The notes beneath the pieces were generated by a model that had not been told where the DNA came from, did not search any database, and saw only the letters and a list, made by a program, of their open reading frames with translations. A DNA stretch of 64,000 nt, from contig RHPI01000273.1 of assembly GCA_009103225.1 (NCBI GenBank), forward strand, positions 1 through 64,000, read 5' to 3'. Shown here piece by piece: positions 13,123 through 45,778 of the stretch. The translations under genes and the position numbers were made by a program. The DNA is from Chlorokybus atmophyticus (taxonomy: Eukaryota > Plantae > Mesostigma and Chlorokybus algae). Each line of letters opens with the position of its first letter. The stretch's first letter is position 1.

Positions 13123-15347
13123 TCAAGCCTCATAGTTCCATGACATAGGAGGGTAGTCGTAGCGCATATTCATTGCTTCAAGCATGAGACGCCCTATGCA
13201 CTCCGCCATTGCGGGAGGAACTGCATTCGCTATGGTAACAGACAAGGTCCTCCATGGCACTCCCAGCACTGTTTGCCATGCAGCAATGCCGCCCCTGGTG
13301 CTTGGAAGGCCATAGATCGGGTACATTTGCTGTGGCGCGTTTGATGTCACAATTGTCTTCTTCGCGCTAGCGGACAGGTGCGGCAATAGCGGTCCAACCG
13401 CCTTGCCCGCGTGCAAGCAGCGTGCTGGTGGGGTAGCTACCACTGGCTGTGTCTCAAACAGACTGTGTCGGCAGGTTGATAGGCCAAACACCGTGCCATA
13501 CAGAGACAAATTGGTCTAAATGAGGTAGCTGCTCCTGACACATTCTCAATCACAAACTTGACCTGGCTTGCAAGCAGCAGATGTCGAACGAGCGGTATCA
13601 TATTCTTGTGTCTCCAGGATGTGCCATGTGCCGCCTGTTGAGGTGCCGAGATAGCACCTGAATAGGCCTGTATAGTGGACTGGCCCATATGAGCTCGTAC
13701 TCGCTCAGCTCTCCTGCACTCAGGGTGCATACATTGCGGTGTATAAAGGGCAGCGGGTACTCAGAGCAGGGACTTATGTCCATCCCGGTCACGTAAAAGC
13801 CTGCGTGATATGGACCGACACTGGCATCGCCACCGCCGCAATATAGGTCGAGTGCCCTTGGTCTGCGTGTGCGTCCAAGCTTGTTGTCAAATGGCGTGTA
13901 TGTGGTCAAGGCTGGCCGTGGTGCTGGCCAGGGATTAATAATGATGCCGTCCGGGTTTACTTTGCGACTGACATTCTCAGAAGGCTCCCGTCCGGCGCGC
14001 AAAACATGGCGTGCCCCGTTAACTGATGTGTACGCGAAAACGTTGCGCCCTTTAAAGTTTATGGTTTGTGGTTGATCACCGTCATCGAATATTATATGGT
14101 GCTGCCCTGCAAAGCCATTTTGCATTGCACCATGCATATATGATGCGTCTTCAATCTCGCACGCCTATTGAGGATATTCTTGTATCCGGTCAGCTCCCCT
14201 TGTGGATAAGAATAACCGCGAGAAGATTCAGGCGCGAGAAGGTGCCAGTCGAGAAAGGACCAGGCGAAGACTTCAATCGAGGAGGTTCCAAGCGCGGATT
14301 CGCGTCCGCAGTCTGGAGACTTCCAAGCGCTGTAGAAGAAACGTTGTAGCTCGATGGTTACATCATTGTATGGCGCGTGTTATAGCTTGTTGGAAAGCTC
14401 TTGAAAGTAGCTACGTGGTGCAACTTAGAGCGCAAGAATTGGTTGAGTGTAAAAATCGTGGTGACTTCCAGACTAGACAGGTGCAGAACTGGCGGGTATA
14501 AAAGCCCGCGGTGTGACTTTGTTGTAATCCTTAGAAAGCCTTTTTGGATTAGCCTTATGTGTATGCTCTGGTAGAGTGTGTGTGCTTGTGCTTGCACCAA
14601 CTCCATGCATGATCAGTAGTGTTCAAATCTCAACAACGCCAAGAAGCGATGCTAACCTGATACTTGCTTCAATGAGTCCACAACGCCCGCATACCATTCC
14701 CCATCCAGCGGCCAATGCACCATGACACTCACACCGATCAGCTGCTCGCATCCCAACTTAACTGCGTTCCGCAGCGATGCAGTGCGCTGTTCAATGGTCG
14801 ATGGTCTGCCTCCTCTACAGCGGCCAGGGGGTGGAACTGCCCACGCCTACACCGTGGAAGACTGCTCTGAATGCAACAACAGCTTCGACATGCATGAAAT
14901 AAGCATACGCCCAACATAATATGCAATGATACGTCGCTGTCCACTCTGCCAAATCACCTCCATAGCATCCACCACTTGTCCACTAACCACATGTCTAGGT
15001 GTTGTCCATGTGAAGAAGCGCATGGGTTCCCCTCGCCACTTGAAGCATGAGCGCGAGCACGAGCACAATTCACACACGCATTGCACGCAATGGAAAAACT
15101 CGGGTTCCTTACACAGCACTTTGCCGCGGCGGCAGCCAAACACGTTGACATTGTGTGTGGTGTAATGCCAGCAAGCAGCATTAAAATCGTGGCACACTGT
15201 TTGCACTCGCTGGCATTCGGTCAAGTGTGCTCGCATTTGCTGCCTACGGCCATTGGCACATATGTACGCATTGCATTGTGGGCACAATAAGCATGGTCTT
15301 CTAAGTGAGGGGGATTCAACTGCTGTAGCCGATATCATGCAAAACAT
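13123..15347 (-). pseudogene. Cys/His-rich domain + Tudor + phage/bacterial-type C5 DNA cytosine methyltransferase, copy 1 (decayed)
   Basis: Cys-rich ORF 15347-14847, then in the same frame after one TAG: EQLIGVSVMVHWPLDGEWYAGVVDSLKQVS. A phase-1 intron at 14656-14107 joins this to GQHHIIFDDGDQPQTINF, which is in frame with ALDLYCGGG (motif I), GMDI, IWASPLY (motif IV, Cys lost), FVIENVSGA (VI), RHSLFET (VIII) and NAVPPAMAECIGR (X). Confidence 0.8.
14166..14599 (+). mobile_element. Diverged solo LTR related to the copia LTR at 27724, inserted antisense in the Tudor intron
   Basis: Co-linear matches to that LTR: TATTGAGGATATTCTTGTATCCGGTCAGC vs TGTTGGAGATATTCCTACATCCGGTCAGC; TAGCTTGTT..AAAGCT...AA..TAGCTACGTGG; CTGGCGGGTATAAAAGCCCGCGG vs CTGGCGGGTATATAACCCCGCGG. 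Candidate TSD ACGCC/ACTCC has one mismatch; the right end is approximate. Confidence 0.75.
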
Positions 15348-15544
15348 GAATCGGCACGGCTGCCCAAAAATTGAGCGAGACTTTAGGGTATGGGCATCAT
15401 TCTAGGGTTGCCAGCTTACGAACCCTAAATGAATCACACTTCGAGAAGCACGACTGTACCATGGAGGGTATTACAGTACCATGCATGATACTACATCAAC
15501 ATGAATGGTACTCCATCCAATAATGATACTACAGTATAAGGATA

Positions 15545-18310: not shown

Positions 18311-18314
18311 GAGG

Positions 18315-18965
18315 TGTCATGCCATCTACCCTCGCATGCCAGTCCTTCTCGAGCATGCCTACACCCAGCCCCACACCCGGGCTACCAGCATGAAGACCGC
18401 GCGAGCCCCAGCCTACTGCTAGCTACTGTACCTCTCATGTAGCATGTAGCTAGGGCTACTTTATAGACCTGTCTGTAGGGACCGCGCGTAGCTGATCAGT
18501 TGTAAGTCTGTTAAATAACACATGTGCTATATTGAGTCTTAGGGGATTTCCGAAATAGCATGAGGCCTCGATGTGACCGTTGGCCTAGTGCCCGCGTGGC
18601 ACTGCACAGTCATAATTTGCCATGTATAAGTAGGAAGTCACGTCACCAGACTGGCTGATGACACTGTAAGTGAGTACTGTGAGTACTAGGAGTACTAAGA
18701 AGTAAAGACTCTGTTTCTAAAGAGCTTGTGAAGCGACTTGAACTGGAAGCACGCTGTCCCGGTTGCCAAGAATTCCCTTACTGCGTCAGACACGGTGCAT
18801 GCTCTTGTGCGCTGTGCCTGTCATTGCTGTGAGCTTGGCGGTGGTGTGTTGTCTCAGTAGTCAGGGTGTTGTATCCACGTGTTGCACACTCATTCACCTC
18901 ACTTAACAGTGTATCATTCTATCCACTCATGCAAAGAACTGTATCCACAGCACTACCTATCGTAG
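18315..18965 (+). repeat. Gypsy repeat A1 (651 bp), followed by 13 bp identical to the start of repeat B
   Basis: Matches 33946-34596 with about 10 substitutions by eye. TGGCTTGTTGACT follows at 18966-18978, then the sequence diverges. Confidence 0.95.
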
Positions 18966-19179
18966 TGGCTTGTTGACTTACAGTGTCACCCTCTTTGCAC
19001 AAGTGAGTGTGTTGCAATCTGCATCAGATAGTGCAGTCTGCACCCAGGGATACATCGCTGGGCATTCGTTATCATTGTCATCACATAGTGCGCACAAGCA
19101 CTAGTGTGTTGGGTGGTAACAGCATTAGGATAGACGGTAGAGCACAAGCACTCTACCCTTTCACCTCTGGACCAGCTGT

Positions 19180-22074
19180 ATGAGCAGGCCCACCCCGTTC
19201 TCCCCAATAGACGAGGGTGACCTTATCAGTTGGAGCCCAACCACCAACCTCACCTACGAGCGGACCAGTGACGGGAGCATCGACCGCAGCAGCAGAGGCT
19301 CGCGCTCCATCTACAGCTTCACCCCGCTCCACTCTACTCCTCGTCATCAAGCTTCTCCACTATTATCGGACAGCGACGACAACGAGATGGAGTCTTCCAG
19401 CTCAACCACATCCCTGCGCTTCTCCGGACGTGCCGGCACCACCTCGCTGGATGAGTTCATCATTAAGTTCCACTCCAAGATGCGGCAGCAAGCTCTGAAG
19501 AACAAAGACTGGTCAGATGAGATCTCTTTCCACATTGCTGCTCAGTATGTTGATAATGAAGCACACGATGTCTGGAAGTCCGTTGCTGAACTGCATCGAG
19601 TAGACGGCTATGGCGAGCTTGCCAGCACCATAGCATCTGCATCTCTGCACCGTCCAGCAGGTGTCGTTTCACCTGCCACTTTAGTTGCAGTAACAGGCTT
19701 GTCCATAGCTGCAGCTCTCAAGCAGGCAGAGGAGGAGGAACCAGAGTTGGTACTTGTCAACTTGACCCCTGCAGAAGTTGAGTACAAGGAGGCCACACGT
19801 CGAGTCCGCATCCTTGACCGTTCTGCCATCATCATTGAGGAACAAAGAGCTGCACAGCAAGCGGCAGCCGCAGAGTTGGGTACTCCTCTACCTCTAGCAA
19901 CACCTGGCTCTCGTGCAGGAGGCAGTGCTTTCACCCTCGGGTCAGTAGCACTGCGCGCACCAGCCATCACCGTAGGTGCTGCCATCTCTGATTCTCCACT
20001 CAAGGACCTGTACGCTGCCCTGCGCCGCACCTTCCCTCCTCAGACCACCAGCAAGGTTGAGGAGCTGAGACGCTTCCGACGCAAGCCCAATGAGGATCCC
20101 CTCCGCTTGTACTCCAGACTGGAAGGTCTGCTAAAGGACACTGACTACAAGATTGTCAGTGAGGAGGTTGCTGCAGTGATACACGTCAATGAGTTGGATG
20201 CTGCTCTGAGCGAGTCGACACGCCTAACTCTGAACTACAGCAGGCCCCTTGGCTACACCCTCAAAGAAGCCTTAGAGACTACACAAGCCATCCACAAGCG
20301 CTTGGTGTATGAGAAGGCAGTGCTGGACACCTACCGCAGCGCCGCACGGCCTGTAGTCAGCACGACAACTGAGCCTCCTCGCCGCGACCGTGGCCGGGAC
20401 GCTCCACCAGCACGCGACAAAGGGAAACGGTCAGCTCATGCTGCACTTGCTGCCCCTGTGCTGTGTCATCGCTGTGGACGGCATGGGCACTACAAAAGGA
20501 GTGCACCGAAGAATACTCAACTTTGGTTTGCGACCACTGTCACAAGACTGGTCATTTAGAGTCAGTCTGCTGGCTCAAGTTCCCATAGTTGAGGCCCGCC
20601 AACAGCTACAACCACAACTTCAGTGGCTACAACAGCAACAACACTGGAGGCCACACTGGCAACCACTTCAGTGGCTACAACAGCAACAACACTGGAGCCC
20701 ACAACAGCAACAACGCTGGTGGCAGTAACAACAGCAACAACGCCAGTGTTCGCAAGGAAGAGCCAGGCTACAGGGGGAAGAACAGACCTCCTCAGCGTAA
20801 GGGACCAGAGACACGTCCGCGCGCTGCTGCTGTTGCCGCTAAGGCTTCAGCCAACCCACCAGCTGATGACCATATGGCAGCCCTCATGGCGCGTATGGCA
20901 CGCTTGGAGGAAGACAAGGAGCAGGACTACCGCGCCTGCTACGCTGCCCGATGGGCGCTGATGGCTGCAAAACGCGAGAGAGACAGGAACACTCCGTCCC
21001 GCGTGCAACCATCACGACGAGCACGAGGGGAAGCTGCAACAACATCAGCAGGCACCTCCTCCGAAACCACCAGTGGTGCTGCCTCCGCAGCAATAGCCAC
21101 ACCGGCTACAACATCGACTCCACCAACGTCAGCAGCACCCACTCCAGTTGCACCACAACCTGGTACACCGATGGACATCGTGACGCCGACACTGGTGAGC
21201 ACAATGGCAGCAGCCGCCATCTCTACCGAATCCGCACCAGTGGGCGGTGCACTTCCCACTGCAGCAGTGCCTCTGTCTGTAGGCGTTGAGACCACTCTCG
21301 CACCACTGACCGGTACCGTTGCAACTGCCGCAATTGCCATCGTCGAGCCCGCTGTCTCTGCAGCGACGCGCGTAGCCACTCTGCCCGCTCTCGACGTCGC
21401 TCAGGCTGTCCCAACGGGTCAGCAAGCTGAGCGAGCATGGGAGACCATCCTGCGCGGAGCAGAGCCCACTACCATCGCCTTCGGTCGGGGGGGGGAGCGC
21501 ACCACGCGTGTAGCCCGCGATGATCGCGTCTTCCCACTACCAGAGGTTCACACCCTTCCAGCACTCACTCAACACTAGTTGGAAGATGAGATCCTTGCTG
21601 GCACTGCACCTCCGATGCGTGACAGGGTGTCTTTGATCAGCTACAGCCCACCTGTAGTGTTGGAGTTGGCCCTGCAGCTGCTCTGGGCGTTGCACCACAA
21701 CATGCAGACCGCCCCGCGCCAGCCTGCACGCATGCCAACCACCACCTTTGAACCCAGCCCGCTGGACACGTATTGGCCGAGACACCGTCCAGCAGCGCAT
21801 TGCCAACGCAGCCGACCTGCCTTTGGGCACTTATGAAGCACTCGGACCTCCTACAACCGCTCGCCTTCATCAGCGCTACCACGCACTGGAACAAGCATAT
21901 CATTGGCGACAAAATCAAGCTGCCGCCATTGCTGCACGTGAACAAGCTCATGAAGCTACGCGTGCACCAGTACCTCAGTCACCAGCTGCTGGTCCATCCT
22001 CCAGCACCACTCGCTCTCCGTCGAGACCAACTCTGACCAAGCGAAGGCGATGGCTCAACAAACCAGGGGGGTGA
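19180..22074 (+). CDS. gag: Gypsy gag region (frameshifted/stopped) with two CCHC knuckles and Asn-rich and Ala/Thr-rich linkers
   Basis: ORF 19180-20559 has a capsid-like LRRFRRKPNEDPLRLYSRLEGLL segment. CHRCGRHGHYKR(E)C spans a frameshift and is followed by CDHCHKTGHLESVC; downstream ORFs 20589-21578 and 21748-22074 continue it. Confidence 0.75.
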
Positions 22075-23139
22075 TCGCCCCGTTGCTGCCTGCGCTGGTG
22101 GAGGATCTACCTGAGGACCAAAGGGAGCCAGGGAGGGGCTACCTTACACCACAAGGGTGTACACAAAGAGATGGAGTAGGACTGGTTGGAGAGCAACAAC
22201 TACGCACTGCTCTGTTGCGACAAGCGACCATGCTGCATCAGCAAGAAGGCATTTCACTTCGGCAGATGCTTGGGATGCGAGACAATGGCAACGCGGCACG
22301 CGCACGGTTAGTGACGTGGCTGGTCACCAACCATCCCGCAGTCCCGTTGTTCGCTTTCGGCGCCAGAATAGCGTGGGTGGACGCATTTCTTCGCTCCATA
22401 CGGCAAGCCTATGATGAAGTGGCTTCCGCCGCCACTGACACTCTGGAGGGAGCTTTGGAGGCTATACCGAGTTTGCCAGGAGTGGAGGCAGGACGTCAGC
22501 GCAGGCGCATCGCCGCTGCTTACGAGCAGCATGTCCAACAGCCAGAGACCCGCCTCACTGTACGCGCACGAGCAATAACAGTGCTGGAAGTGGGAGTGGT
22601 CAACGGCAGATGGGATGCTTACATGGCAGGGATCCTCAGGGTGCCCACCATCACTCACGACATGAAAGCGCGGCTCCTACGCGCAGTGTACCTGCAGCCC
22701 ATGCCTCAGAACCATCGCTGGATAGACGTGAACAACAATGCGACGGCTACATGGGAAGGTACACTAGTTAGAGAGGCAGCCCATGCTGTGCGATGGAGCT
22801 ATGCAGAGGAGCAGGCTGCACGAGAGGCAGTCCCGCAAACACCAGGTCCTCCAGGGTTCCCGCCACAGCCACTGGCCACTCCTACTGGCATGACAACAGC
22901 TGCACAGAGGGTCAACCCTCCTGCACCTCCACTTGGACAGGTTGCAGCAGCACCTCCAGTGCCTAGGCCACCGCGCGTGTACCAGCAACCGCGACAAGGA
23001 TGGTTTGGACAAAGCCGAGGACAAGGAGGCCCACAAGATCCATCAGGCAGAGGAGCCCTGGCTGCCCTACGGTCAGGCCCCGCAGATGAGAGTGAAGCAA
23101 CAGTCTCTCCACGCAAGAAGTTCCGTCGCTTCGAGAGGC

Positions 23140-23560
23140 TGCGCATCAACGCCAATGTAGCCATAATCGCCAACCAAGGCAAGCACGTGACCGTCAATGG
23201 TCGGGCACCCAAACGCGTGATGCTGGACACTGGAGCACAGCCTGTCATCATTGGGCGCTACTTCGCACGAGATCTCGGCATCACCAGCGCTGAGCTGCTT
23301 CCCTGTCCCTACCAGCTGGACACCGCAATCGGCAACCGCGACAAGGTGCTCGGCCTTACCAAGCAGATTGTGAGCATCCGCCTCACAGGACAAAACCCTT
23401 TCCACAGCACCGAGATTGTACAAAGGTGTGTGGTCACCGATGCCGGGTCCTTTGACCTACTGCTGGGACAGGACTTCAACTTCCCTGTCGGCCTGAGGAT
23501 GGACTGCTGGACTGAGCAGGCATGGTTCCGACCGCATTGGGATGAGGATGATGGAGAGGA
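23140..23560 (+). CDS. Retropepsin aspartic protease domain of the gypsy polyprotein
   Basis: VTVNGRAPKRVMLDTGAQPVIIG...FDLLLGQDF in ORF 22050-24236; catalytic D at 23226. Confidence 0.9.
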
Positions 23561-23948
23561 GCACGGATTCCTACCTCTCGAGCTGGTGGCCAAGGCCCGC
23601 TCGCAACGAAGGTCGGCCGCAGCAGCCACCTACAGTCCTACAGAAAGCTCACGTGTGCCTCGTGCCCGAACGCAGCCGAGGACAACTGCAACGTGCTCGA
23701 GCCCGAGCCTAAACTCTGAAGAGGACTCTCCTACACCGTACGATGAGTCTCAGGAGACTGTCACCAAAGAAGTGGCCTTTCAGGAGCCATCCGAGCGTCG
23801 CTGGAGCGCACAAGTAGCAGCACACATGCTACTGACCAGGCCTCAGCTCACTGCACACTTCCCTGTCTACAAAGACCAGGCTACAGTGCAGGAGCAGTAC
23901 CACATAGCTACTGGAGTTGTGGAGTTCCACATGTTCCGCCGACAACAA

Positions 23949-24900
23949 GGCATCACCGTGCTGGAGCTGTTCGGAGGCATAGGCAGTGGGCTTGCGGCTG
24001 TCCTCAACACAGGAACAACAGTCACCAAGTACCTCTACTGTGACCCTGACCCTCATGCACAAGAGGCTCTGAGCCATCATTTACGACAGCTGCACCAGCG
24101 CTACCCGCAGCAGCTACCGCTGTCGGCACTGCAAGGGAGCCAGAAGGCTCTGCCGCAGGGCATCCGCTGGATTACCAAGGATCACCTGCAGGCAGTCGCC
24201 AAAATTGATCTGCTGATAGCAGGATGGGAGTGTTAAGGGCACTCCGGGGCAGGCAGAGGCCAAGGGCTCTCTGATCCTCGCTCACAGCTGTTCTGGGAGC
24301 GAATGAGAGTCATCAAACTCCTGCAGACCAGTTAGGTCGCTAGGCCCTTTGGGTACATCATCGAGAATGTGCACTATGAGGATGACAAGCGGCATCACGT
24401 CGCCAAGGCCTATCGACAATTATGCTCCTTGCTGGGGCATCCTCTCAAAATCAACGCCGCGCGTCATAGATCTCGCGCACACCGCGTCCGCGCCAAGTGG
24501 ACCAACCTGGCCATTGTGGAGGACCTGTTTCTGGCAGAGTACCAATACAGCAATCGGCCACGGAATCTCGTCGTTGATGACATCCTGGACCCTGGACGCA
24601 CAGCGCAACCGGTCACACGCCTTGACCACCACCACTTCTACCAGTGCAACCAGCCTGGTCAGCCGCGCCGCGCACTACCCACACTTGTATCCTATCCAGG
24701 CTCCTACGCGTTTCGCAATGGAGGCGACAGCATGGTGTTAGACTCCAACACTGGACAGCTGGAAGAACCCAATGCTCGTGAGCGCGAGCGTGCTATGGGA
24801 TTCTCTCCAGGCAGCATCACAGGCTCCACGCTGACAACCAGTCAACAGTGTCAGTTGTTAGGGCGCGCCATGGATCAGAACAGCATGGTGTGGTACTTGG
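23949..24900 (+). CDS. DNMT3/DRM-like C5 cytosine methyltransferase domain embedded between protease and RT (two in-frame stops)
   Basis: ITVLELFGGIG (I), LYCD (II), IDLLIAGWEC*GHSGAG...GLSDPRSQLF (IV/V), GYIIENV (VI), SRAHRVRAKWTN (VIII), PNARERERAMGF (IX), QLLGRAMD (X). One frame throughout, with TAA at 24234 and TAG at 24333. Confidence 0.9.
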
Positions 24901-25229
24901 AAATGTGCTTTGCTCTCCAGGACCGCCATGTGTCCTTCCAGGAGCTCGACCACCTGACTGGGGGGTGGATTGCTCGCTTTTCAGAGACCAAAGCAGCACA
25001 CACCGCACTCGAAACCGCCCACATGGAGGAGCAGGCAGCAGCCACTGTGGAAGACATTCCAGTGGTCGCCAACGCTACCTCGTGGTCCCACGCCATTGGA
25101 CCGCTGGCCACAGGCCAGACTCGAGAGCAATTCGAGGCTCTTCTCAATAAGTGGAGGAGCCAATTCAGCTTCAGTGTGAAGGAGGTGGGCATTTGCTCAG
25201 CATACCAGATGGACATTAAACTAGTGGAC

Positions 25230-27723
25230 ACCGAACCGGTGTTCAGAATACAGTACCGCCTCTCCAAGCTAGAAGAAGACTTGATGGAACTGAGGTGCAA
25301 GGCGCTGCTAGATGCAGGCCTGATCGAGGAGTCCACATCGGACTTTGCGGCCGCGACCGTCATGCCCCTGAAGAAAGATTCAGCAAGCAACTGGACAGAC
25401 CGGCGCATGTGTGGCGACTATCGCCCCCTCAACAACAAGATCAAGCAGGACAGGTATCCAATGCCTACCGCAGAAGGCATCTTTGACGATGTAGGAGACT
25501 GTACGGTCTTTAGTATCCTGGATATGCGCCAACGGTACAACCAGATTGCCATCAAGGAGGAGGACAAGCACAAGACTTCCTTCTGGGGAAACCGGCAGCT
25601 GTACCAGTGGACGGTCATGCCCTTCGGACTGAAGAACGCTCCGGCCAAGTTCCAGCGCGTCATGGACAAAGCCCTCAAGGGGTTGGACTGCGCACGCTGC
25701 TACATCGACGACATCCTCATCTTCAATCACAGCAATGAGGAGCATCTCCAGCACGTCGAAGAGGTGCTACAGAGGCTGAAGGAAGTCGGGATGACGGTGC
25801 ACCCTGACAAGTGCACCTTCTTCACCCACAAGGTACCCTACCTAGGACACATGATTGTGCCCCATGGTGTGTACGTACAGCAGGCCAAAGTCGAGGCACT
25901 GGTGGCTATCCCTGCCCCCACAGACCTCACGCGGCTGCGGGCCTTCCTCGGCCTGGCCAACTATTACCGCCGGTTTGTCAAGGACTTTGCCAAGATCGCA
26001 AGGCCTCTCAATGAACTACTAAAGAAGGACACCGAGTTCCTGTGGAAGGAGGCGCAACAGGAGGCCTTTCAGGAGCTGAAGCTCCGCCTCACCACAGCTC
26101 CCATTCTGCAACGCCCTGACTACACCAGGTCGTTCATCAAGCACACAGACTGGAGCAAGCTCGGCATGGGGGCCGTGCTTGTACAGCACGACAACAACAA
26201 GAAGGAGCGCGTAGTGTCGTACGCCAGCCGCAGCAACAACAGGGCTGAGGCCAACTACAGCAGCTACGAAGGGGAGTGTCTCGCCGCAGTGGGGCCATCT
26301 CCTTCTTCCGACCCTTCCTGTTTGGACGGCAGTTCCAACTGGTCACTGACCATCAACCCCTTAAGTGGCTAATGAACAACCAGCACTTAACAGAAAAGTT
26401 AGCACGATGGGCGCTGCTGCTCCAGGAGTACAACGTTGAGGTGGAACACCGCGCAGGCCTTGCCAACCAGGATGCGGATGGCCTCAGCCGTAACCCCAAC
26501 CTCAGCACCAACGACGCCACAGGCGCCCGACATGAGTTGGGTCCTACAGCTGCACCTTCAGGTGTGGCCACCATGTTTGCTGTCGCTGCGCTACGCTCAG
26601 GACGCAGGACTCAGATCGCTGAGGCAGCAGCAGACGGGGACATGCCCGCTCTCGAGCCCGCCATCACCACCACAGATCCTTTATCCGAAGAAGCGATCGC
26701 TGCCGACCCTAAGGTGGATGATGAGGAGCTGGCACCCACCGACACACGACAAGACATCTGGCTGGACGAGCCATCCCTCGCACTGCTTCAGACTGGACAG
26801 CTTCCAGCAGGCATGAGCGCACGCGAGAAGGACCGCGTCCGGCAACGCACTCATCGTTACCGCTGGGCCAACGACAGGCTGTATCGACGGATACAAGATG
26901 CAGATCAGGAGGTCCCCACACCAGCTGCACGTGAAGGCATCATCTCCTCCCTTCACACCGAGCTCGGGCACTTCGGTGTCAAGCGCACGGTCAGCCTGGT
27001 CAGGACCCAGTACTGGTGGTATGGGGTGCACAGACAGGTGCGGGAGTTCGTCAGCAACTGCCAGCAGTGTGACATGGTTCGCGCCAGCCTCAACACGCGC
27101 AACGCCACCTTGCATCCCCTTCCCATTTTCGGGTTCTACCGCTAGGGACTGGACATCCTCGGAGACCTAGCGCCCTCAGCGCGAGGCAACCGCTACATCC
27201 TCGTCATGATCGAGCACTTCTCCAAGTGGGTGGAGCTGGTGCCCCTGCCCGACAAGAGCAGTGAGGGAGTAGCCCAGGCTTTCCTCTCCCATGTACTCGG
27301 ACGCTTCGGCAGCTGCGCTGAAGTCCTCACCGACCAGGGTACGGAGTTCAGAGGAGCCTTCGACAAGCTTATCGACAGATGCTTCATCGACCACCGTCGC
27401 ACCTCATGCGACCACCCGCAGGCTGACGGCCTCGCCGAGCGTACCGTGCAGACCATCAAGAAGGCACTGCGCAAGTACGTCCTCGCCTACGAGAAAGATA
27501 CCTGGGATGATCACCTCCCATGGGTAGCAATGGGCTACCGGCTGTTCAAGCAGGCAGCCCTGCGAAAGTACAGCCCATGTTATCTACTGTTCGGAAGGCA
27601 GCCATTGCTCCCTTTCCGCGTACAACAGGAGGTCGACAGAGTGGTGGACAATCTCGACAACCCCGACGAGATGTTGTATGATCTGACAGTGCGCTGTTCA
27701 AACACACAGTCCCCATGGCCTTC
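25230..27723 (+). CDS. pol: Gypsy RT, RNase H and integrase (N-terminal and core)
   Basis: RMCGDYRPLN, LDMR, VMPFGLKNAPAKFQRVM, YIDD (25701), HTDWS...ASR...EGECLA, LVTDHQPL, HTELGH...CQQC, LDI...TDQGTEF...QADGLAER. Frameshift near 26290 and TAG at 27143. Confidence 0.95.
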
Positions 27724-28432
27724 TGTTGGAGATATTCCTACATCCGGTCAGCCTGCCCTGCATACAAGAGAGAAGAGAAGGGACCTCGATGGGAGGACCT
27801 CGAAGACTCCGGACATGAAGGTCCTGGCGCGGACTGCAGAGAAGGGTCCTAGGAGAATCGTCATATCTCCTAGGATACTCAGTCTTATAGGACGTGGCAT
27901 AGCTTGTTACAAAGCTTATCAAGTTAGCTACGTGGCACATCTTACAGCGTAGGATATGGTTCAGTATATCGGACGCTGTTGCATGTAGACCAGCAGTGTG
28001 TACAAACTGTGTACTGACTGGCGGGTATATAACCCCGCGGTCTGTTGGCAATAAATCGGGAAGTGTGTTGCCTTCTCCTGTGTGTCATTGCTTGCCCTCT
28101 TCACTTGCATGCTTGCTTCTCAACAGGTTATGGGCCCACACTACGCGTGAAGAGTGTGAGAAAGAGATTGAAAGCAAAGTGAAGAAAAGTGACAAAGTGC
28201 ATTGAAGTGAAGATCGAAGTCACTCAAGACTTAAGAGCGAAGAGAAGACTGAAGGCGCTGAAGAGTGAAGTGAAGACCGAAGTCGTTCAAGACCGAAGTC
28301 ATTAAAGTCACTCAAGAGTGAAGTGTAGATTAAAGTTACTGAAGTCAACAAAGTCACTCAAATCACAACACGTGAAGATTATCAAAGCAAGTCTCAAGTG
28401 CTAACTGCAAGAAGAAAGCAGGCGCGGCAAAG

Positions 28433-31400: not shown

Positions 31401-32725
31401 TGGCAAAGGGATTTTTGCAACAAGAAGGTGTGGATTTCAATGAAGTGTTTGCACCTGCAAGTAAGCATGCAACCTTCCGCACATTGATCGCCATGGTTGC
31501 TGCTGAAGACCTCGAGTGTCACCACCTTGATGTGAAGACTGCTTTCCTTTACGGAGAGCTGGAGGAAGAGATCTACACCAAGCAACCACCAGGCTACGCA
31601 GAAGGGGAGCCAGGCATGGCTTGCAAGTTGATCAAGGCTTTGTATGGGCTGCGACAAGCACCACGTGTGTGGCACATTCGCCTCACGAAAGAGTTGGAGA
31701 AACTCGGCTACAAAGCATCCTCAGCGGATCCGGGGCTCTTCATCCATGAAGAAAAGAAGGTTTACTTGCTCGTGTATGTGGACGACATCATTGTCACGGC
31801 CAAGCGAGTTGAAGACCTAAAGGAGACAAAAAACGGACTACAGCAAGCATTCGCAGTACGCGACCTTGGAGAGGTCAAGTTATTTCTTGGCATGGTGATA
31901 GAGCGTGACAGAGCAGCACGCACAATCAAGATCAGCCAAGAGCAGATGGTGAAGCAACTTGTCACCAAGTTCGGACTCAACGAAGCAAAGACCAAGTCTA
32001 CTCCATTGGCACTCGGCACCAACCTCGTCAAAGCGAAAGATGAGGAAGTACTCGACAAGGCTCAGTATCCCTATGGTGAGCTTGTTGGGAGTATGCTCTA
32101 CCTAGCAGTGTGCACAAGACCCGACATCGCACATGCAGTTGGAGTGCTTGCGCGCTACATGTCTNCACCAAGCATGGAGCACTGGCGTGCAACGAAGGGA
32201 GTATTGCGCTACGTGGCTGGAAGCGCAAGTGTTGGCATCAAGTTTGGTTGCGGAAGCACAGAGATGGAGGGCTATTGCGACGCAGACTTTGCAGGTGACC
32301 TCGATAGCAGGAGGTCCACCACGGCGTACGTCTTCAAGTTGAATGGAGGCGTGGTGAGCTGGAACAGTAGGCTGCAACCCACAACAGCTGCATCTACTTC
32401 GGAAGCGGAGTACATGGCAGCATCGGCTGCAGTAAAGGAGGCGTTATGGCTTCGCAAGCTGATGGCAGATCTGGAGCACCCGATGGCGTGCATCACGATC
32501 AACTGCGACAACCAAGGTGCCATTAAGTTGCTGAAGCACCCCATCGCCTCGACAAGGACAAAGCACATTGATATCATGTATCACTTTGTGCGAGACAGAG
32601 TCACACGCAAGGAGGTTGAGTTCCAATATTGCAATACGGAAGACATGCTCGCGGACTTCATGACGAAGCCACTGTCACCGCTGAAGTTCAAGGCATGTTG
32701 CAAGGGACTCGGCATATGTGCTTAG
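28433..32725 (+). CDS. gag-pol: Copia gag-pol (gag, CCHC, protease, integrase, RT, RNase H), disrupted by a solo LTR and one stop
   Basis: KLDTNNYSTW, CHYCGIKGHISKDC, WAINSGC, LWHRRFGH..CEPC, LVHMDVCGP..SDRGGEY..TPQ*NGAAER (TAG at 30566), RYKARLVAKGF, LYGLRQAPR, YVDD, YCDADFAG, DMLADFMTK. Confidence 0.95.
28918..29323 (-). mobile_element. Solo LTR of the same copia family inserted antisense into its own gag
   Basis: Near-identical reverse complement of the 27724 LTR, with 5-bp TSD GCTAC (28913-28917, 29324-29328). Removing 411 bp restores the reading VVATLLETSSSELTLDDVLPKLL in frame. Confidence 0.96.
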
Positions 32726-33175
32726 GTGAAAGAAGACCAAGCGTTGGAGGCCAAGCTGCCCGCGTGGGAGTGTTGAAGATATTCCTACATCCGGTCAGCC
32801 TGCCCTGCATACAAGAGAGAAGAGAAGGGACCTCGATGGGAGGACCTCGAAGACTCCGGACATGAAGGTCCTGGCGCGGACTGCAGAGAAGGGTCCTAGG
32901 AGAATCGTCATATCTCCTAGGATACTCAGTCTTATAGGACGTGGCATAGCATGTTACAAAGCTTATCAAGTTAGCTACGTGGCACATCTTACAGCGTAGG
33001 ATATGGTTCAGTATATCGGACGCTGTTGCATGTAGACCAGCAGTGTGTACAAACCGTGTACTGACTGGCGGGTATATAACCCCGCGGTCTGTTGGTAATA
33101 AATCGGGAAGTGTATTGCCTTCTCCTGTGTCATTGCTTGCCCTCTTCACTTGCATGCTTGCTTCTCAACACCTTC

Positions 33176-33658
33176 AACAACCTGCGCATCGCGCAGCACC
33201 GCGACACGCTGCGTTACGAGCGTGTGCGCAGTGGTTTCTACAAGGAGCGGGAGCGCCGCTTCGAGTCAGGAGACTTCGTCTACCGTATGGCGTCTACACG
33301 CGACACCCTCGATACCTCTGTCGGGCGTGCTGTCTACAAGGTATTGAAGGTGCACCCCACAGGGGTACTGGACCTGCTGGGACAACGAGGCGAGCGCATG
33401 AAGGACAACATGGTCAACTGCGCGCCCTGTCATCTCCCCTACATTGCTGGCTTCACCAAGATCCAGCACCCGCGTCCGCTACGCAGCACCCGATGCGAGA
33501 AGTGTGGCAGCGCCGACGACGACCCATTGATGATGTTATGCGACGGCTGTAATCAAAGCATGCACTGCTACTGCCTTGACCCTCCACTGGATGCAGTACC
33601 TTTGTGGGAGTACTGGTGCGATGACTGCCGCATCAACGGTCCCCCACACAGTCGGTAG
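33176..33658 (+). CDS. Gypsy integrase C-terminal region ending in an intact PHD finger
   Basis: Across the TSD it reads PMAF|NNLRIAQHRDTLRY. It ends with CEKC...LMMLCDGCNQSMHCYCLDPPLDAVPLWEYWCDDC (C4HC3). Confidence 0.92.
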   Translation, partial: NNLRIAQHRDTLRYERVRSGFYKERERRFESGDFVYRMASTRDTLDTSVGRAVYKVLKVHPTGVLDLLGQRGERMKDNMVNCAPCHLPYIAGFTKIQHPRPLRSTRCEKCGSADDDPLMMLCDGCNQSMHCYCLDPPLDAVPLWEYWCDDCRINGPPHSR

Positions 33659-33704
33659 GAACTGAGTTTTGGAACAGAGGGCTACCCCAGATTCTCAGGG
33701 GGGG

Positions 33705-33943
33705 TGGCTTGTTGACTGTGTGCACTACGACACAGTCTGTACACAAAGGTGGCGAGCGGCATCGGCTCGTCCACTGCACTGAACACCGCGTAGGCTCATC
33801 TTCAAGCCTATGCCCACGATTGGGGGGTTGTCTTTTGCTTGCATGACTCCAATGCAATGCACGGCACTAGCATGCGTGCAGCACTAGCACTCCTCCGCAG
33901 CCTGTCCGAGACAAGGTTGCCCTCGACCATGGCAGGCACGACA
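33705..33943 (+). repeat. Gypsy repeat B1 (239 bp), immediately after the polypurine tract
   Basis: Preceded by AGGGGGGG (33697-33704). Matches 34597-34835 with about 2 differences. Ends GGCACGACA, then GC, then A2. Confidence 0.95.
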
Positions 33944-33945
33944 GC

Positions 33946-34835
33946 TGTCATGCCATCTACCCTCGCATGCCAGTCCTTCTCGAGCATGCCTACACCCAGC
34001 CCCGCGCCCGGGCTACCAGCATGAAGACCGCGCGAGCCCCAGCCTACTGCTAGCTACTGTACCTCTCATGTAGCATGTAGCTAGGGCTACTTTATAGACC
34101 TGTCTGTAGGGACCGCGCGTAGCTGATCAGTTGTAAGTCTGTTAAATAACACATGTGCTATATCGAGTCTTAGGGGATTTCCGAAATAGCATGAGGCCTC
34201 GATGTGACCGTTGGCCTAGTGCCCGCGTGGCACTGCACAGTCGTAATTTGCCATGTATAAGTAGGAAGTCACGTCACCAGACTGGCTGATGACACTGTAA
34301 GTGAGTACTGTGAGTACTAGGAGTACTAAAAAGTAAAGACTCTGTTTCTAAAGAGCTTGTGAAGCGACTTGAACTGGAAGCACGCTGTCCCGGTTGCCAA
34401 GAATTCCCTTACTGCGTGAGACACGGTGCATGCTCTTGTGCGCTGTGCCTGTCATTGCTGTGAGCTTGGCGGTGGTGTGTTGTCTCTGTAGTCAGGGTGT
34501 TGTATCCACGTGTTGCACACTCATTCACCTCACTTAACAGTGTATAATTCTATCCACTCATGCAAAGAACTGTGTCCACAGCACTACCTATCGAAGTGGC
34601 TTGTTGACTGTGTGCACTACGACACAGTCTGTACACAAAGGTGGCGAGCGGCATCGGCTCGTCCACTGCACTGAACACCGCGTAGGCTCATCTTCAAGCC
34701 TATGCCCACGATTGGGGGGGTGTCTTTTGCTTGCATGACTCCAATGCAATGCACGGCACTAGCATGCGTGCAGCACTAGCACTCCTCCGCAGCCTGTCCA
34801 AGACAAGGTTGCCCTCGACCATGGCAGGCACGACA
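33946..34835 (+). repeat. Gypsy repeats A2 (33946-34596) + B2 (34597-34835)
   Basis: Direct copies of A1 and B1, ending in CA followed by TSD GAGG. Confidence 0.95.
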
Positions 34836-34839
34836 GAGG

Positions 34840-35412: not shown

Positions 35413-35599
35413 CCATAATATGCCAATGGCTGGGTTGGACAAGAGATGCCTTTGTCGTACCATTAATGTTACGCCTAAGCCATTGTTACCCTTGGTTGTA
35501 CGAAGCATGGATGGTATGAATGCATAAGTCGTACCATCAACCATAGCAGAAGGACGCACTACAAGTGCGACTCCAATGCGGGACACTAGACGCAAAACC

Positions 35600-37899: not shown

Positions 37900-38232
37900 A
37901 ATTAGGCTCAGTCGCCTCCCGCGCTGGACTGGTGTGTAACCTACAGGTGCCTGTCACTTAGACTGAGTCACCTTATGACTGATGTGTAATTTGCAAGTGC
38001 CCGCTAATTAGGTGTAGTCACCTGATAAAGCCTGATGTGTAACTTACAGGTGCCCGTTAATTAGTTGTAGTCACCTGTCAAGGCCTAATAAGTAACTGAC
38101 TGTTGATTAGGCATAGTCACCTGTTAAGGCCTGATAAGTAACTAACAGGTGCCTGTTAATTAGGCATAGTCAACTGTTAAAGACTGAATCGTACCGGAAA
38201 AAAGCCTGATAGTAACGAATGTTACTATCAGG
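37900..38232. repeat. Degenerate ~52-bp tandem array (5-6 units) ending in a 12-bp-arm hairpin
   Basis: Unit approximately AATTAGG(T/C)(G/A)TAGTCACCTG.TAA(A/G)GCCTGAT..GTAACT.ACAGGTGCC.GTT. Hairpin CCTGATAGTAAC-gaat-GTTACTATCAGG at 38205-38232. Confidence 0.85.
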
Positions 38233-38272
38233 TCCTTGTATCGGGATTACAGGTGGACTAAGCCACGACGGT

Positions 38273-41369: not shown

Positions 41370-43919
41370 AATTCAGGGACTTTGTGGACCGTGATATGCT
41401 GCATTACCTGGGGTTGTTCTGCTAAGTGCGCGCCCAGATCTGGGATCTGCGCTTGGCCAGCTGGAAGGGGTTGGGCCTTCTTCTTTTTGCGCGGGATCGA
41501 TTCTACCATCAAAGGGTGATGACCATGCACCTGGCAAACCTCCAAACTATGCCGCATGACCTCTTGTCCATGCTACAAGCAGGCGGCTTTGCTCTCAGCC
41601 TCACTGGCGCTTCTGGGCGCCTGGTGGCGCTGGACAAGGCTCATGAGTGTCAAGTTAATTGTGACATGAAGATGTCACTCTGCAGGCCCACTCCCGAGTA
41701 CCTACGCCAGAAGTCGCTGTACCTTGGTGAACGCAGTCAGTCGCACAAGCAATTAAAGCGTCAGCTCATATTGGACATGACTGTTGATCACACCGACATG
41801 GATGATGATGCAGACAACGACCCGAACCGCTTCCAACGCAACCTCAAGGCGGATGAATCCAAGTGTAGTGCAAACATCATGCACATGATGGAACTGCTCA
41901 GGAACTGCAACGCACTCGACATGCCACATGCAATCATCATTTCATGCACCTCACAACGGGGTTAGCAGCGATTATAGCTGCCAATGCAGACCTCACGCGG
42001 CATCATCAAGTGGGGATGGAAGCAATGAAGGCTTTTGTGGAGGGTGAGATCTGCAGAGAAGCACCCTCGACTAAAATCAGCAGGTGTTTCAACCTCAGGA
42101 CAATGGCACCTGCAAAGAAGAGGATGTCCAAGCAGGCTACAGTGCTTAAACAATACAGACAAGAGATGTTGGTTGCCAAAAAAAACGATTAGCAGTCAAC
42201 GAAGCTGACAGAGATGTGGTTACCGCACGCTACTGTGCGCACCAGTTGACCTTAACTGCTTGAGTTGTGCGTCACCTCGTGGTGTGGAATGCATCATCTT
42301 AGAGGGCATGTTTCTGATAAACCAGGAGTGTCAGTTGGCACAAGGCACTATCAAGGACTACATTGTCCATGTTATGAGAACAGCTGTGATTCCACATCTC
42401 GCCAACCCAACGGTCCAGAGTGTCCACATTGTCTTTGACACCCCTCGTCTGCAAACTAGAGTCAAGTCGTCATTGCAGCGCGCACGTGACGGAGCCGCTA
42501 CAGCGTTCGGCGGATAATCTGACTCTTAAATGGGAGCTGCTAAGATCGTGGCGAGACATAAAAGATCGCCGCCTTAAGCGTTCTCTGTGCGCGCTCATGC
42601 AGCGGTACCTGCCTGGCATGTTGTCTGCGCACCTGCGCCCAAACCAAGAGGTGGTGATTGCAAGCGGCTCACACTCGGAGGATGTTGGCGACTTGGCGTC
42701 GGTGGTGTACCAATAGGGCAGGTCATTCTGCAGAGTACACAGTAGATGAGTATGTGTGCAACCATGGCGAAGCGGACTCAAGAGTATGGGTGCATGCCAA
42801 CCGACCGCCCTACAATAACATCATCATCTACTACTCACCTGACACAGATGTAATAATGATCGGGTTGGCAATTACTGAGATGTGGGACTCTCCCATGAAG
42901 GATGTCACTATCCAGCTCGCGCAAAACTCGCGGGTCCACCAGGCCTCCTTTTGTCAACATAAATGAGCTGCGCCTGCATGTGACGATTACCCATCAGTTG
43001 CACTCATTGCGGTCCTCCTCAAAATGCTGGCTGCTGCTTGTGTACGCCGCCAGTGGATGCGACTACACATCGTTTGTGGGTAGTATCACGAAGCAGTTCA
43101 TATGGCGGACGGTGCTGGCACAGCATACCGAATTTATCATCGGCAGCATTAGCGACGCAGAACGAGGAGATGTGTTGCTTCATGTTGCGACTTGTCGGGT
43201 GCTCGTACTTCGAGAAATACCGCTCCTCTTTGGACAGCGGTACACCAGCCTCTCTATTCTTCAAGCTTCACGGTGGTAGCGCACCTACAAGTGACAGACT
43301 GTTGCTGGCAGCATGGCTAGATGCGATTCACAAGACTATCTAAAATAAGACTGCCACACCAAGGGACACAATGCCAACCGTTGACGCGTTGTGGCTGCAT
43401 GCAATGCGTGCAGTGTATGCGGTGCAGATGTGGATGCAAAGCTGCACTACCGACATGACATTCCCTGACTTGTGTGACTACGCTTTTCAAGAACAGGATG
43501 GTGTGTGGGTGGCCGTGCAGGACCTACCTGAGAACATTGCAGCGGCGTGCAGTCGGCGCACCCTGCTCATGAAGGGCTGCGGTTGCAAGCGTGGTTGCTC
43601 CACAAAGCGGTGCAAGTGCCACACGGGAGGGCAGTCCTGCAGCGATGCGTGCTTCTGTCTGGGTTGCGACAACCACGTCGACCATGCATCAAGTGCACAA
43701 GCAGTCAACGACCACGACGCGCCAATGGGGCAGAGTCAGGTGCCAGTGCAGCTGCATGAGGACATCAACTACGACAGTCTTAAGTCAGAGACGGATGACT
43801 TAGATGTTAAGGATCTCACTCACATGCAGTCCGACGACTTTTCAGGGAATCAATCATACCCTGGCACCGACGACAACTTTGCATGTACCTTGAACACTTT
43901 TAGGGTTACGAGCACATGA
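41370..43919 (+). mobile_element. Academ-type (AcademX-like) transposase pseudogene: transposase C-terminal part + XPG/FEN1-like nuclease + Cys8/Tesmin-like CXC; apparently intronless and 5' truncated
   Basis: W.F.DFV..D...Y...F..VR...WDLRLAS.K....LLFARDR..HQR...HL...VALDKAHE..VN.D.K; ILEGM; VHIVFD; NHGEADSRV; YSPDTDV; ASGCDYTS (H3TH); PTVDALWLHAMRA; GCGCKRGCSTKRCKC..GGQSCSDACFCLGCDN. Confidence 0.72.
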
Positions 43920-45778
43920 TTAGGGTTGCTTACGATCAGTTGCCCGCGTCAAGTATTGTGCAGGGCGGCGGTTGCCGAGTGTGTCCTGGTGTGGGGTCCA
44001 ACATCAACATGGGCGGATCCTCCACGACCTGCAATTTTTGCCATTCATTTGTTGTAAGCAACTTTCAGAGGCAGCGCCTCCACAAACACCAGCTGCAATG
44101 CACGCAGTACAAGCGGATGTACAATTTCACAGCTGCGTGCTGGCACCATCATGCCCAAGGAGTGCACAGTATCGTTTGTCGTGGCAAACACAAATGCACT
44201 TTGCCTAAGTTTTTCAACCAAAAATACGTATGTTTAGAATGTGCATGTGCTACCTTCAAATGGCACGGGCAGCCCATGCGCTATATGCCCTATATACGCC
44301 CTGGCACCCGCCTACCACAGTTCAGTATGAAGCATGCAGCGGTACGTTGAGGTGGAACATGCACCAACCTGCTATAAAAGTGCCCTCCAAGCAGTTCAAC
44401 ACATGTGTTAACCTGCTTAGGTTCAACGCCCTCGCTGTGGCCGTGGCTCCACGCAACCGCTGGCGACGCGCTTAGATGCGCCTAACACTGAGATAGCCCA
44501 GGTGAGTATGCTGTACAACACAGTACTAGGGTGGATTAAGGGCATTAATGTGTGCCCCTGTGCAGCATCCACACACTCACTTGCTTGTATCTGTACCGCT
44601 AAAAGTTTGATTGATAACATCAGAAGCGCCTTGCGTTGCGTCGAGGGCGGCGCTGCGCTGATCGGCTGCACAGTGATGGTGTTTTGGCCAGTAGAACACG
44701 GTGGTTCTCTGGCATTGTATACCACTACAACAGCAGACAAGGTACTTTTTAAGGCCCGTTCCTCCGGCAATGCACACTCTATGTCTGTGTGCAATACACA
44801 CAAAACATATGGTATATGCAGATTGTCACAGCGTGCGCTTCAGCGATGGAGACACACATCACTTGAAAGTGGCATTGCACAATGTTGTAGTTACTTTGGG
44901 GGACGATGGTTGTGCACTCGGTTTCATAGTTGGGGGTCAATGACCGCAAGGCCACACCACCCATCACGTGCTTACTTTTGCGGTCGGCTTCGTCACCTCT
45001 ACTGTCCACACACACTCACACCGACAAGGATGGTTGCCCCCGTCGCCTCAAAGTACTGGATCTATGTTGCGGAGGCGGAGGAGCTTGCATGGGCTTGTAC
45101 CGCGCAGGTTTTATTGTGATTTGAGTTGACATTAACGCCCAGCTAGACTACCCCTTTACTTTTATACAGGCAGATGCAATGCAAGTGGACCTCTCAGGTT
45201 ATGATGTGATTTGGGCTAGCCTTCCTTGCCAAGCCTACGCCAGTTGCATACCTTTTGCTCATTGCAACATGCATCAAGAGCAGTGAAATACAACACCTTG
45301 CTGCCAAACCTGCGAGGGAGGCTGGTAGCCAGCGGGAAGCCGTACGTTATTCAAACATACCATCGGCTGCTCCTCACATAAGTCCAAACATGGTCCTGTG
45401 TGAGACCATGTTGGACTTGCGACCTTCAGACACAGAGTGTTTGAAACACAACCCCTGCTCAGTGTTGAGTTCGTGTGCGACCATGCGGACAGGAGCTTGG
45501 GAACGCTGTCAGGACACCCAACAGTGCAAGCCAAGACCGCAGACTCAGCAAGTACACAGCAGATGTACCCTGTACATGGCAAAGCAGGATGCAGAGGGAG
45601 ACTCACCGGTTGGCAGCTAGCTCTGGGCATAGATTGGATACCGTCTGAGTCCACCCTTGTAGAACGCATCCCCCCTGCCTACGCTGAGTACATAGGGAGG
45701 TGCGTGCTAGAGTCATTAGGGTACACATTGTGCAGCAGTCCGCTATCATGGTCCAGTCACAGCAATGGCTACTTGTGA
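43916..45778 (+). pseudogene. Cys/His-rich domain + Tudor + phage/bacterial-type C5 DNA cytosine methyltransferase, copy 2 (decayed)
   Basis: Cys-rich ORF 43916-44350 is homologous to copy 1. Tudor reads ALIGCTVMVFWPVEH(fs)WFSGIVYHYNSRQ, then an 80-bp phase-1 intron (44742-44821), then DCHSVRFSDGDTHHL. MTase motifs follow: VLDLCCGGGG (I), [13 protein letters not shown] (IV), RHRVFET (VIII), ERIPPAYAEYIGR (X). Confidence 0.8.

Follow-up and report, generated by a model that had tools for sequence, protein, structure and literature searches.

TET/JBP genes have been described as accessory genes of fungal KDZ/Plavaka transposons (PMC12730594), and red-algal Plavaka elements encode PAG2, an N6-adenine methylase combined with a SET domain, and PAG3, which combines a ParB domain with a 2-oxoglutarate oxygenase (10.1101/2025.02.11.637652). 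A ParB-methylase is present in the Sola1 element of Ectocarpus, where a Tudor domain has also been found on a Gypsy element and was called the first transposon-borne Tudor (PMC12477816). Retrotransposons that encode DNA methyltransferases (DNMTs) occur in the dinoflagellate Symbiodinium and the charophyte Klebsormidium (PMC5890265). According to work cited in PMC12344493, bacterial N4-cytosine (N4C) methylases have been domesticated in rotifers and in Marchantia, the bdelloid rotifer enzyme N4CMT joining such a methylase to a chromodomain. Here we describe two decayed copies of a gene that combines a Cys/His-rich domain, a Tudor domain and a cytosine-C5 methyltransferase (C5 methylase), each copy adjoining a transposase-like gene. 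They lie in a window of 64,000 nucleotides of the alga Chlorokybus atmophyticus (positions 1 to 64,000 of contig RHPI01000273.1, assembly GCA_009103225.1).

Like the epigenetic accessory genes of DNA transposons, the window genes place a prokaryotic-type DNA- or chromatin-modifying enzyme beside a cut-and-paste transposase, Plavaka included; they differ in the class of enzyme, which is here a C5 methylase, and in the reader, which is here a Tudor domain, and their carriage inside an element is putative. They resemble the retrotransposon DNMTs and N4CMT in that mobile elements either carry a cytosine methylase or have one recruited against them, N4CMT being likewise a bacterial methylase coupled to a histone reader. 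Those enzymes, in contrast, are of the DNMT3 or N4C type, reside inside retrotransposon open reading frames (ORFs) or host genes, and involve neither a Tudor domain nor a DNA transposon. A further point of comparison is RDM15 (PDS5C), a reader of histone H3 monomethylated at lysine 4 (H3K4me1) that is linked to RNA-directed DNA methylation; its Tudor domain sits in a cohesin-associated HEAT protein, whereas the one described here is fused to a methylase. The methylase itself shares the collinear blocks FCGxGG, PPCQ, ENV, RHR-FE, GIDW and IPPAY-E-IG with small phage and bacterial C5 methylases of ∼220 residues (phrog_363; PF00145 over the N-terminal half), at 41–54% identity over matched stretches of 60–85 residues; to this enzyme the window genes add the Cys/His domain, the Tudor domain, introns and a C-terminal tail. 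A full-text literature search, incomplete in its coverage, brought up no account of either a Cys/His-Tudor-C5 methylase or a viral C5 methylase bearing a methyl-CpG-binding domain (MBD) such as the one discussed below. Parasite-borne DNA methylases with chromatin readers are already known in kind; the combination of a phage-type C5 methylase with a Tudor domain appears to be new.

Two dead copies of a reader-methylase gene

Copy 1 of the gene occupies positions 13123..15347 on the minus strand, where it was recognised from ORF pieces, a direct reading of the DNA and collinear tblastn matches to copy 2, which lies at 43916..45778 on the plus strand. Both copies have the same domain order, with the Cys/His domain followed by the Tudor domain and the C5 methyltransferase. 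When the pieces of copy 1 were compared with the window by tblastn, the copies were collinear and 35–42% identical in protein, with 35% identity in the Cys/His domain (E 3e-14), 42% in the N-terminal part of the methylase (E 9e-9) and 41% in its C-terminal part (E 2e-22). This confirms an earlier note on this DNA, which had claimed two homologous genes of this architecture at these positions, and the C-terminal motifs that it quoted are found in both copies. The gene is the sole protein-level similarity between the two loci in an all-against-all comparison of the window, and a hidden Markov model (HMM) of the methylase family detected no third copy there. At the DNA level, blastn found essentially no likeness between the copies, which are therefore old paralogues.

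Both copies are pseudogenes, as the same note had stated, with frameshifts and in-frame stops that can be read directly in the DNA. Copy 1 has lost its catalytic cysteine to a frameshift at motif IV (13659-13690) and its frame shifts again near 13510; a TAG stop in frame at 14847-14849 might instead fall in an unrecognised intron. Copy 2 is interrupted by an in-frame TGA at 45122-45124 and by further stops, and has frameshifts in both the Tudor domain and the methylase, with the ENV motif changed to QTY. In copy 1, however decayed, the C-terminal half of the Tudor domain and methylase motifs I–IV form one unbroken frame of 179 codons (13598-14137). The two domains thus belonged to one polypeptide, and the proposed fusion of a reader to the enzyme stands. 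Taken together, the window very probably preserves a reader-methylase fusion of phage or virus lineage that bears introns and is now dead.

The C5 methylase domain and its classification

The methylase domain spans 13165..13867 (minus strand) in copy 1 and 45041..45718 (plus strand) in copy 2. It was delimited in both by hhalign and by tiling with an HMM of 219 positions, built from 30 bacterial and phage relatives only, and in copy 1 also by its match to phrog_363. The HMM tiles copy 1 at profile positions 2-79, 76-118 and 113-217 and copy 2 at 2-28, 30-79, 69-103 and 120-215, and hhalign gave a probability of 97% for the C-terminal parts of both copies. The raw ORF pieces, which are too short, had no match in Pfam. 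The S-adenosylmethionine-binding loop of motif I (FxGxG) is kept in both copies, as LYCGGG in copy 1 (13829-13846) and as LCCGGGG in copy 2 (45062-45082), the latter aligning at profile positions 2-28. The Pro-Cys of motif IV is present in copy 2 as LPCQ (45218-45238), and the frameshifted copy 1 has no cysteine in its broken motif; the ancestral gene evidently had one. Motif VI (ENV), motif VIII (RxR) and the C-terminal IPPAY..IG block are collinear. ENV is intact in copy 1 (13539-13550) and degenerate in copy 2 (45337-45360), motif VIII reads RHSLFE in copy 1 (13453-13470) and RHRVFE in copy 2 (45428-45445), QQMYP occurs in both (13318-13332 and 45557-45571), and the final block is represented by VPPAMAE (13201-13221) and IPPAYAE (45668-45688), respectively.

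A search with the 179-residue piece of copy 1 found 1093 relatives among 1.84 billion protein representatives, of which the best 150 were listed, down to 47.5 bits. The top relatives among the matches listed are proteins of ∼220 residues or tandem doubles of these. The relatives match PF00145 over their N-terminal half and phrog_363 ('DNA methyltransferase') at E 1e-30 to 1e-34, and the copy 1 piece itself matches phrog_363 at E 5e-6. The 30-protein profile matches the solved C5 methylases 3G7U, M.HaeIII, DNMT2 and M.HhaI; its similarity to the bacterial methylases and DNMT2 extends over ∼110–130 positions, whereas that to DNMT1 is confined to motif I (E ∼0.003). One relative (P0007) is situated among phage-like genes, including one for RusA, and 63 loci in IMG/VR encode relatives of the methylase. 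None of the accessory domains of the eukaryotic families DNMT1, DNMT3, CMT, DRM and DNMT5 (RFD/BAH, PWWP/ADD, chromo, UBA, SNF2) is present in the window genes. On these sequence grounds, placement of the enzyme outside the DNMT1, DNMT3, CMT and DRM families is supported. The small phage/bacterial type assigned to it earlier agrees with the PF00145 and phrog_363 matches of its relatives, with the HMM tiling and with the restriction of the DNMT1 contact to motif I.

Relatives of the methylase on giant-virus-like contigs

The nearest relatives of the window methylase were identified in a tree, built by a quick maximum-likelihood run, of the methylase domains of the two copies and 75 relatives. 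Both window copies and two metagenomic proteins, designated L002/L003 and L067, form one group with a Shimodaira-Hasegawa-like approximate likelihood ratio (SH-aLRT) support of 97, the order within the group being unresolved. The earlier description of the methylase as prokaryote-derived therefore holds for the type of enzyme, which is phage/bacterial, but not for its nearest relatives, which are not bacterial and lie on giant-virus-like contigs. The L002/L003 protein, encoded on JGI contigs and identical in two samples, is 42–48% identical to the window copies and thus as near to them as they are to each other. The C-terminal tail of the window genes (GYTL..P.SW) is shared only with this protein, and the motifs CxHAG..LG, QM[YF]P and W[QA]..[LM][GQ][IV][DP]W are common to all four proteins (copies 1 and 2, L002 and L067).

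The L002 contig is made up of densely packed intronless genes. They encode an mRNA-capping triphosphatase, a divergent TATA-binding protein, Ser/Thr kinases, a thioredoxin, a YqaJ recombinase and a topoisomerase II of 1089 residues that is without a C-terminal domain and has no close relatives in IMG/VR. A TnpB/Fanzor-like ORF of 610 residues (18137-19969) has a C-terminal Cas12f1-like TNB domain at E 3e-5 and 24.4 bits, below the cutoff of 26.3. This gene content is typical of giant viruses, and the contig is presumably viral. Its methylase gene (9239-10534, corresponding to 1064-2359 of L003) is split by one in-frame TGA at 10019-10021. The N-terminal part of the product contains motifs I–VIII, and the second part consists of an MBD (PF01429, E 6e-9) followed by the C-terminal part of the methylase. 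Since the MBD separates motifs I–VIII from the C-terminal part, it occupies the variable loop of the enzyme, which may represent a two-subunit or read-through reader-writer. The L067 methylase (8963-10168, 401 residues) is encoded on a contig of 45 kb that holds ORFans and a gene for a GT47 glycosyltransferase and is likewise putatively viral; the methylase carries an insert of ∼105 residues, with no recognised domain, at the same place in the variable loop.

The L002 gene and the window genes are alike in coupling a chromatin-type reader to the enzyme, and they differ in the reader and its position, an MBD in the variable loop of the former and an N-terminal Tudor domain in the latter. Unlike the window genes, the L002 gene has no Cys/His domain and no introns and is cut by an in-frame TGA. 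Because the nearest relatives lie on giant-virus-like contigs, one of them with an MBD in this same variable loop, the proximate source or partner of the window methylase was probably a giant virus. When 108 related loci (1.2 Mb) were scanned in six frames with HMMs, neither a Tudor nor a Cys/His domain was detected, and the other window genes had no match to any related locus.

The Tudor domain, its intron and the Cys/His-rich domain

In copy 1, a segment reading WP..EWY.GVV is followed by a GT, and an AG located 550 nt downstream opens the frame of ..HHIIFDDGD. The N-terminal half of the Tudor domain (14657..14741, minus strand) forms the end of an exon and carries the cage Trp and Tyr; it is followed by a GT..AG intron of 550 nt in phase 1 (14107..14656, minus strand) and by the C-terminal half with F-D-D-G-D (14030..14106, minus strand), whose frame extends unchanged into the methylase. 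The N-terminal half alone matches PDB entry 7DE9 at E 0.007. The spliced domain of 65 residues matches 7DE9_A at E 1.2e-8 in a gapless alignment of 45 residues that spans the splice junction, which validates both the identification of the Tudor domain and the splice model. The next matches of the spliced domain were the 53BP1 Tudors (E 0.003–0.06), and no Tudor model in Pfam reached E 0.01. The plant chromatin type that the earlier note had ascribed to this domain is upheld by the match, 7DE9 being the Tudor domain of Arabidopsis RDM15 (PDS5C) bound to H3K4me1 (PMC8184781). In RDM15, Trp616, Tyr623 and Tyr641 form the cage, Asp643 and Asp645 select the monomethyl state, and Glu647 contacts H3R2 (PMC8184781). 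At the corresponding positions copy 1 has W, Y and F followed by D-x-D with identical spacing (the second cage residue lies 7 positions after the first, and the third 18 after the second), and copy 2 has W, F and F, again with D-x-D. The equivalent of Glu647 is not retained in the window Tudor, so that the peptide it reads may differ from that of RDM15.

The Tudor domain of copy 2 (44658..44893, plus strand) consists of two halves around an intron, with a frameshift near 44695. This GT..AG intron of 80 nt (44742..44821, plus strand) is also in phase 1 and interrupts the same Tudor codon as the intron of copy 1. An intron common in position and phase to paralogues that are only ∼40% identical shows that the gene has long been a nuclear one subject to splicing, and the gain of spliceosomal introns, claimed earlier, is thereby borne out for one that both paralogues share. 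The intron of copy 1 is longer because it contains a Copia-LTR-like fragment: ∼140 nt at intron positions 270-409 (14248-14387) are 75–89% identical to the long terminal repeat (LTR) of a nested Copia element at 27893-28044.

Upstream of the Tudor domain lies the Cys/His-rich N-terminal domain (14970..15347, minus strand, in copy 1), which was delimited by alignment of the two copies and has 11 Cys/His positions common to both. It is probably zinc-binding. No homologues of this domain were found in word-indexed proteins, JGI metagenome contigs or IMG/VR, and an AlphaFold2 model computed from the two-sequence alignment was unusable, with a predicted local distance difference test score (pLDDT) of 39.

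Transposase-like genes adjoining the two copies

Copy 1 is convergent with a decayed Plavaka (CMC/EnSpm-type) transposase gene at 9568..12915 on the plus strand, which was recognised from ORF remnants. A segment of this gene (10676-11095) matches PF18759 at E 2.5e-6, its 27.4 bits exceeding the Pfam threshold of 26.3, in agreement with the Plavaka neighbour reported previously. The tail-to-tail gap of 207 bp given for the two genes holds when the stop at 12811-12813 is passed over and the Plavaka frame extended to that at 12913-12915. Copy 2 adjoins a decayed nuclease-like gene at 41426..43919 on the plus strand, also assembled from ORF pieces, the last of which (43344-43919) ends in an ATGA (43916-43919) in which the ATG of copy 2 overlaps the upstream stop codon. 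The nuclease-like gene has a PIN/XPG-like GEAD...SPDTDV pattern at 42658-42963, seen by eye only, and a CXC cysteine-rich C-terminus (43344-43916) with a weak TCR/CXC match (E 6e-4, below the Pfam cutoff). It had no XPG match in Pfam at E up to 1 and no PDB match at E up to 10, and a homologue search was empty. Academ lineages encode a nuclease or a helicase (PMC10045372), and the Academ core has no Pfam model (PMC5751038); the Academ label that the earlier note gave to this putative nuclease-like gene is plausible.

Several local features were noted in and around these genes. The Plavaka gene contains a 235-bp tandem duplication, 93% identical, at 11303-11772. A unit of 46–53 nt, repeated four times in tandem (37998-38202) some 3 kb upstream of the nuclease-like gene, could represent subterminal transposase-binding repeats. 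Some 570 bp downstream of copy 2 lies a near-perfect palindrome of 118 bp (46345-46462), with two 56-nt arms that are 96% complementary and a loop of 6 nt. A 95-nt sequence at the junction between the nuclease-like gene and the start of copy 2 (43860-43954) recurs exactly at 49664-49758, where it ends at a single N (49759), with dissimilar flanks on both sides; it stems either from an artefact of joining in the assembly or from the very recent duplication of a patch. A third transposase-like remnant occupies 100-4400 on the minus strand, with an N gap at 2674-3155 and the motifs ..AVDHSFK.. and ..ARGTSPLEGFH..; a DUF6729 match (E 3e-7) from the Pfam sweep probably falls within it, and no methylase copy adjoins it.

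Do the genes travel as passengers of DNA transposons?

The reading that we favour is that the genes travel as passenger genes of DNA transposons, to which we assign a probability of about 0.5. The distance between each copy and the end of the transposase-like gene beside it is 0–207 bp, and with three such genes in 64 kb the chance of both adjacencies under uniform placement is ∼2 in 1000, a hand estimate that the clustering of transposons raises. The family is also multi-copy and decayed, as are transposon genes, and the passenger genes with epigenetic functions cited above provide precedents in Plavaka and other DNA transposons. The copies represent an old eukaryotic gene family with introns, and both of them are dead. 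The N-terminal Cys/His module would, at a guess, target DNA or a partner protein, and the Tudor domain of RDM15/PDS5C type would read a low-methylation lysine mark, with H3K4me1 as the model. The third component is a compact C5 methyltransferase, phage/bacterial at depth and with its nearest kin on giant-virus-like contigs. We infer that the protein, when intact, would bind to nucleosomes bearing the mark and methylate cytosines close by, so that a single polypeptide would serve as reader-writer. Its genes would most likely ride as accessory genes of DNA transposons, copy 1 with Plavaka in convergent orientation and copy 2 from the stop codon of the nuclease-like transposon gene, and the element may benefit through self-methylation, dampening or manipulation of host chromatin.

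Several observations weigh against this reading. No terminal inverted repeats (TIRs) or target site duplications (TSDs) bounding either unit were found, a scan of 5500-18400 and 34200-50000 returning only chance-level inverted-repeat pairs; the elements are old and available as single copies only. Searches of word-indexed proteins, JGI metagenome contigs, IMG/VR and the 108 related loci yielded no other example of the Cys/His or Tudor-methylase architecture. Among the 1.84 billion representatives, none of the best 150 of 1093 matches covers the Tudor half, and a relative as divergent as copy 2 (∼46 bits) would fall below the 47.5 bits to which these extend. The neighbour of copy 2 is without a transposase match in the Pfam, PDB and homologue searches. 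Both copies are dead, with no sign of the protein working in this genome. Within the window, CpG depletion is mild and alike in transposon regions (observed/expected 0.63–0.88) and host-gene regions (0.70–1.06), so that there is no transposon-specific methylation footprint and the measure is uninformative. Finally, the two loci were only ∼10 kb apart before an LTR insertion described below, which weakens the case for two independent associations. The status of the genes as transposon cargo, asserted in the earlier note, is thus not established, neither TIRs or TSDs nor another copy in any collection having been found. Nor is the exchange between transposon superfamilies that it proposed, since the two loci may have been parts of a single composite element or of one nest; our confidence in an exchange between Plavaka and Academ is low.

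The two methylase loci are now parted by a Gypsy-type LTR element (18312..34609, plus strand) with 667-bp LTRs that are 98.4% identical and with the Copia element (27724-33070) nested inside it. This insertion of 16.3 kb is a later event; with it removed, copy 1 would begin ∼10 kb away from the nuclease-like gene. One giant element of Plavaka type could then have carried the nuclease-like gene together with both methylase copies as its passengers, or all three could be parts of an old transposon pile, with nothing exchanged. Red algae (10.1101/2025.02.11.637652) and Amoebidium (PMC11244446) are known to harbour giant Plavaka elements that bear several accessory genes, and the Pfam and homologue searches for an Academ assignment of the copy 2 neighbour were empty. 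An identity of only ∼40% between the copies is, however, not that of a recent duplication within one element, termini are found for this arrangement no more than for two separate elements, and the gene upstream of copy 2 has the size and decay of a transposase; we consider a single composite unlikely. An ordinary host chromatin gene family, whose decayed paralogues merely lie in a transposon graveyard, would account for the spliceosomal introns and the plant-type Tudor domain. Bona fide host genes (a P-type ATPase, a GT61-like and an LCAT-like gene) stand 5–15 kb away, and with about half of the window consisting of transposon debris, transposase neighbours are expected to be frequent. Such a family would nevertheless have to place both copies within 207 bp of a transposase-like gene, one by a 4-nt ATGA overlap, and to be multi-copy and dead. 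The absence of a conserved orthologue among the best 150 of 1093 matches would also be unusual for a green-algal or plant chromatin enzyme. We regard a host origin of this kind as quite improbable.

Giant viruses of green algae possess many DNA methylases. The genes could also be leftovers of endogenised giant-virus DNA near which transposases inserted later, and their closest relatives do lie on the giant-virus-like L002/L003 and on L067, both of presumed viral nature. Giant-virus endogenisation and the methylation of such insertions are documented (PMC11244446, PMC12344493). We regard this explanation as the least probable of those weighed here: an intron kept in paralogues that have diverged to ∼40% identity and a eukaryotic-type Tudor domain point instead to long residence as spliced nuclear genes, no viral hallmark gene appeared when 150 segments of the window were searched against Pfam, and no window gene other than the methylase matches the related loci. 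Transfer could equally have run from the alga or its transposons to the virus.

Genomic setting

The window has a GC content of ∼0.52 and consists of eukaryotic DNA rich in transposons. All named relatives of the Copia polyprotein belong to green algae or charophytes (Chromochloris, Myrmecia, Tetradesmus, Klebsormidium, Volvox and Haematococcus), at 45–57% identity. This points, if indirectly because retrotransposons can be transferred, to a green-algal host rather than to a red alga, which the literature on Plavaka and Academ had at first suggested. Host genes with introns are located at 50–61 kb (50900-61300), 5–15 kb from the methylase-gene locus. They comprise a GT61-like glycosyltransferase gene (51011-52162, plus strand), a heavy-metal P-type ATPase gene (54057-57267, minus strand) identified by HMA, E1-E2 ATPase and hydrolase matches, and an LCAT-like lipase gene (∼59000-61300). 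CA/GT microsatellites occur near 52100.

Implications for the biology of algal genomic parasites

Mobile elements and viruses that have DNA-modifying enzymes of their own blur the line between silencing by the host and self-regulation by the parasite. Known cases comprise DNMT3-like enzymes in retrotransposons, TET/JBP oxygenases, and adenine or N4 methylases in DNA transposons; the window adds a phage-type C5 methylase with a Tudor domain that has the residue signature of an H3K4me1 reader. Given the position of the two copies beside transposase-like genes, and the occurrence of their closest relatives on giant-virus-like contigs, algal genomic parasites may bring along DNA-methylation writers of their own. 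A wider and distinctly more tentative proposal, possible in our view yet doubtful, is that one compact C5 methylase lineage moves between giant viruses and DNA transposons of algae and has repeatedly been wired to chromatin readers, to an MBD in the virus and to a Cys/His domain and an H3K4me1-type Tudor domain in the transposon-associated genes. Parasites would thus carry reader-writer modules that set or copy methylation on their own chromatin or on that of the host.

The window genes being dead, their value is that of a lead. If intact and active copies exist, they would constitute a compact and testable reader-writer system, and a candidate tool for mark-directed DNA methylation. They would also represent a route by which the capacity for cytosine methylation could pass between viruses, transposons and algal genomes.

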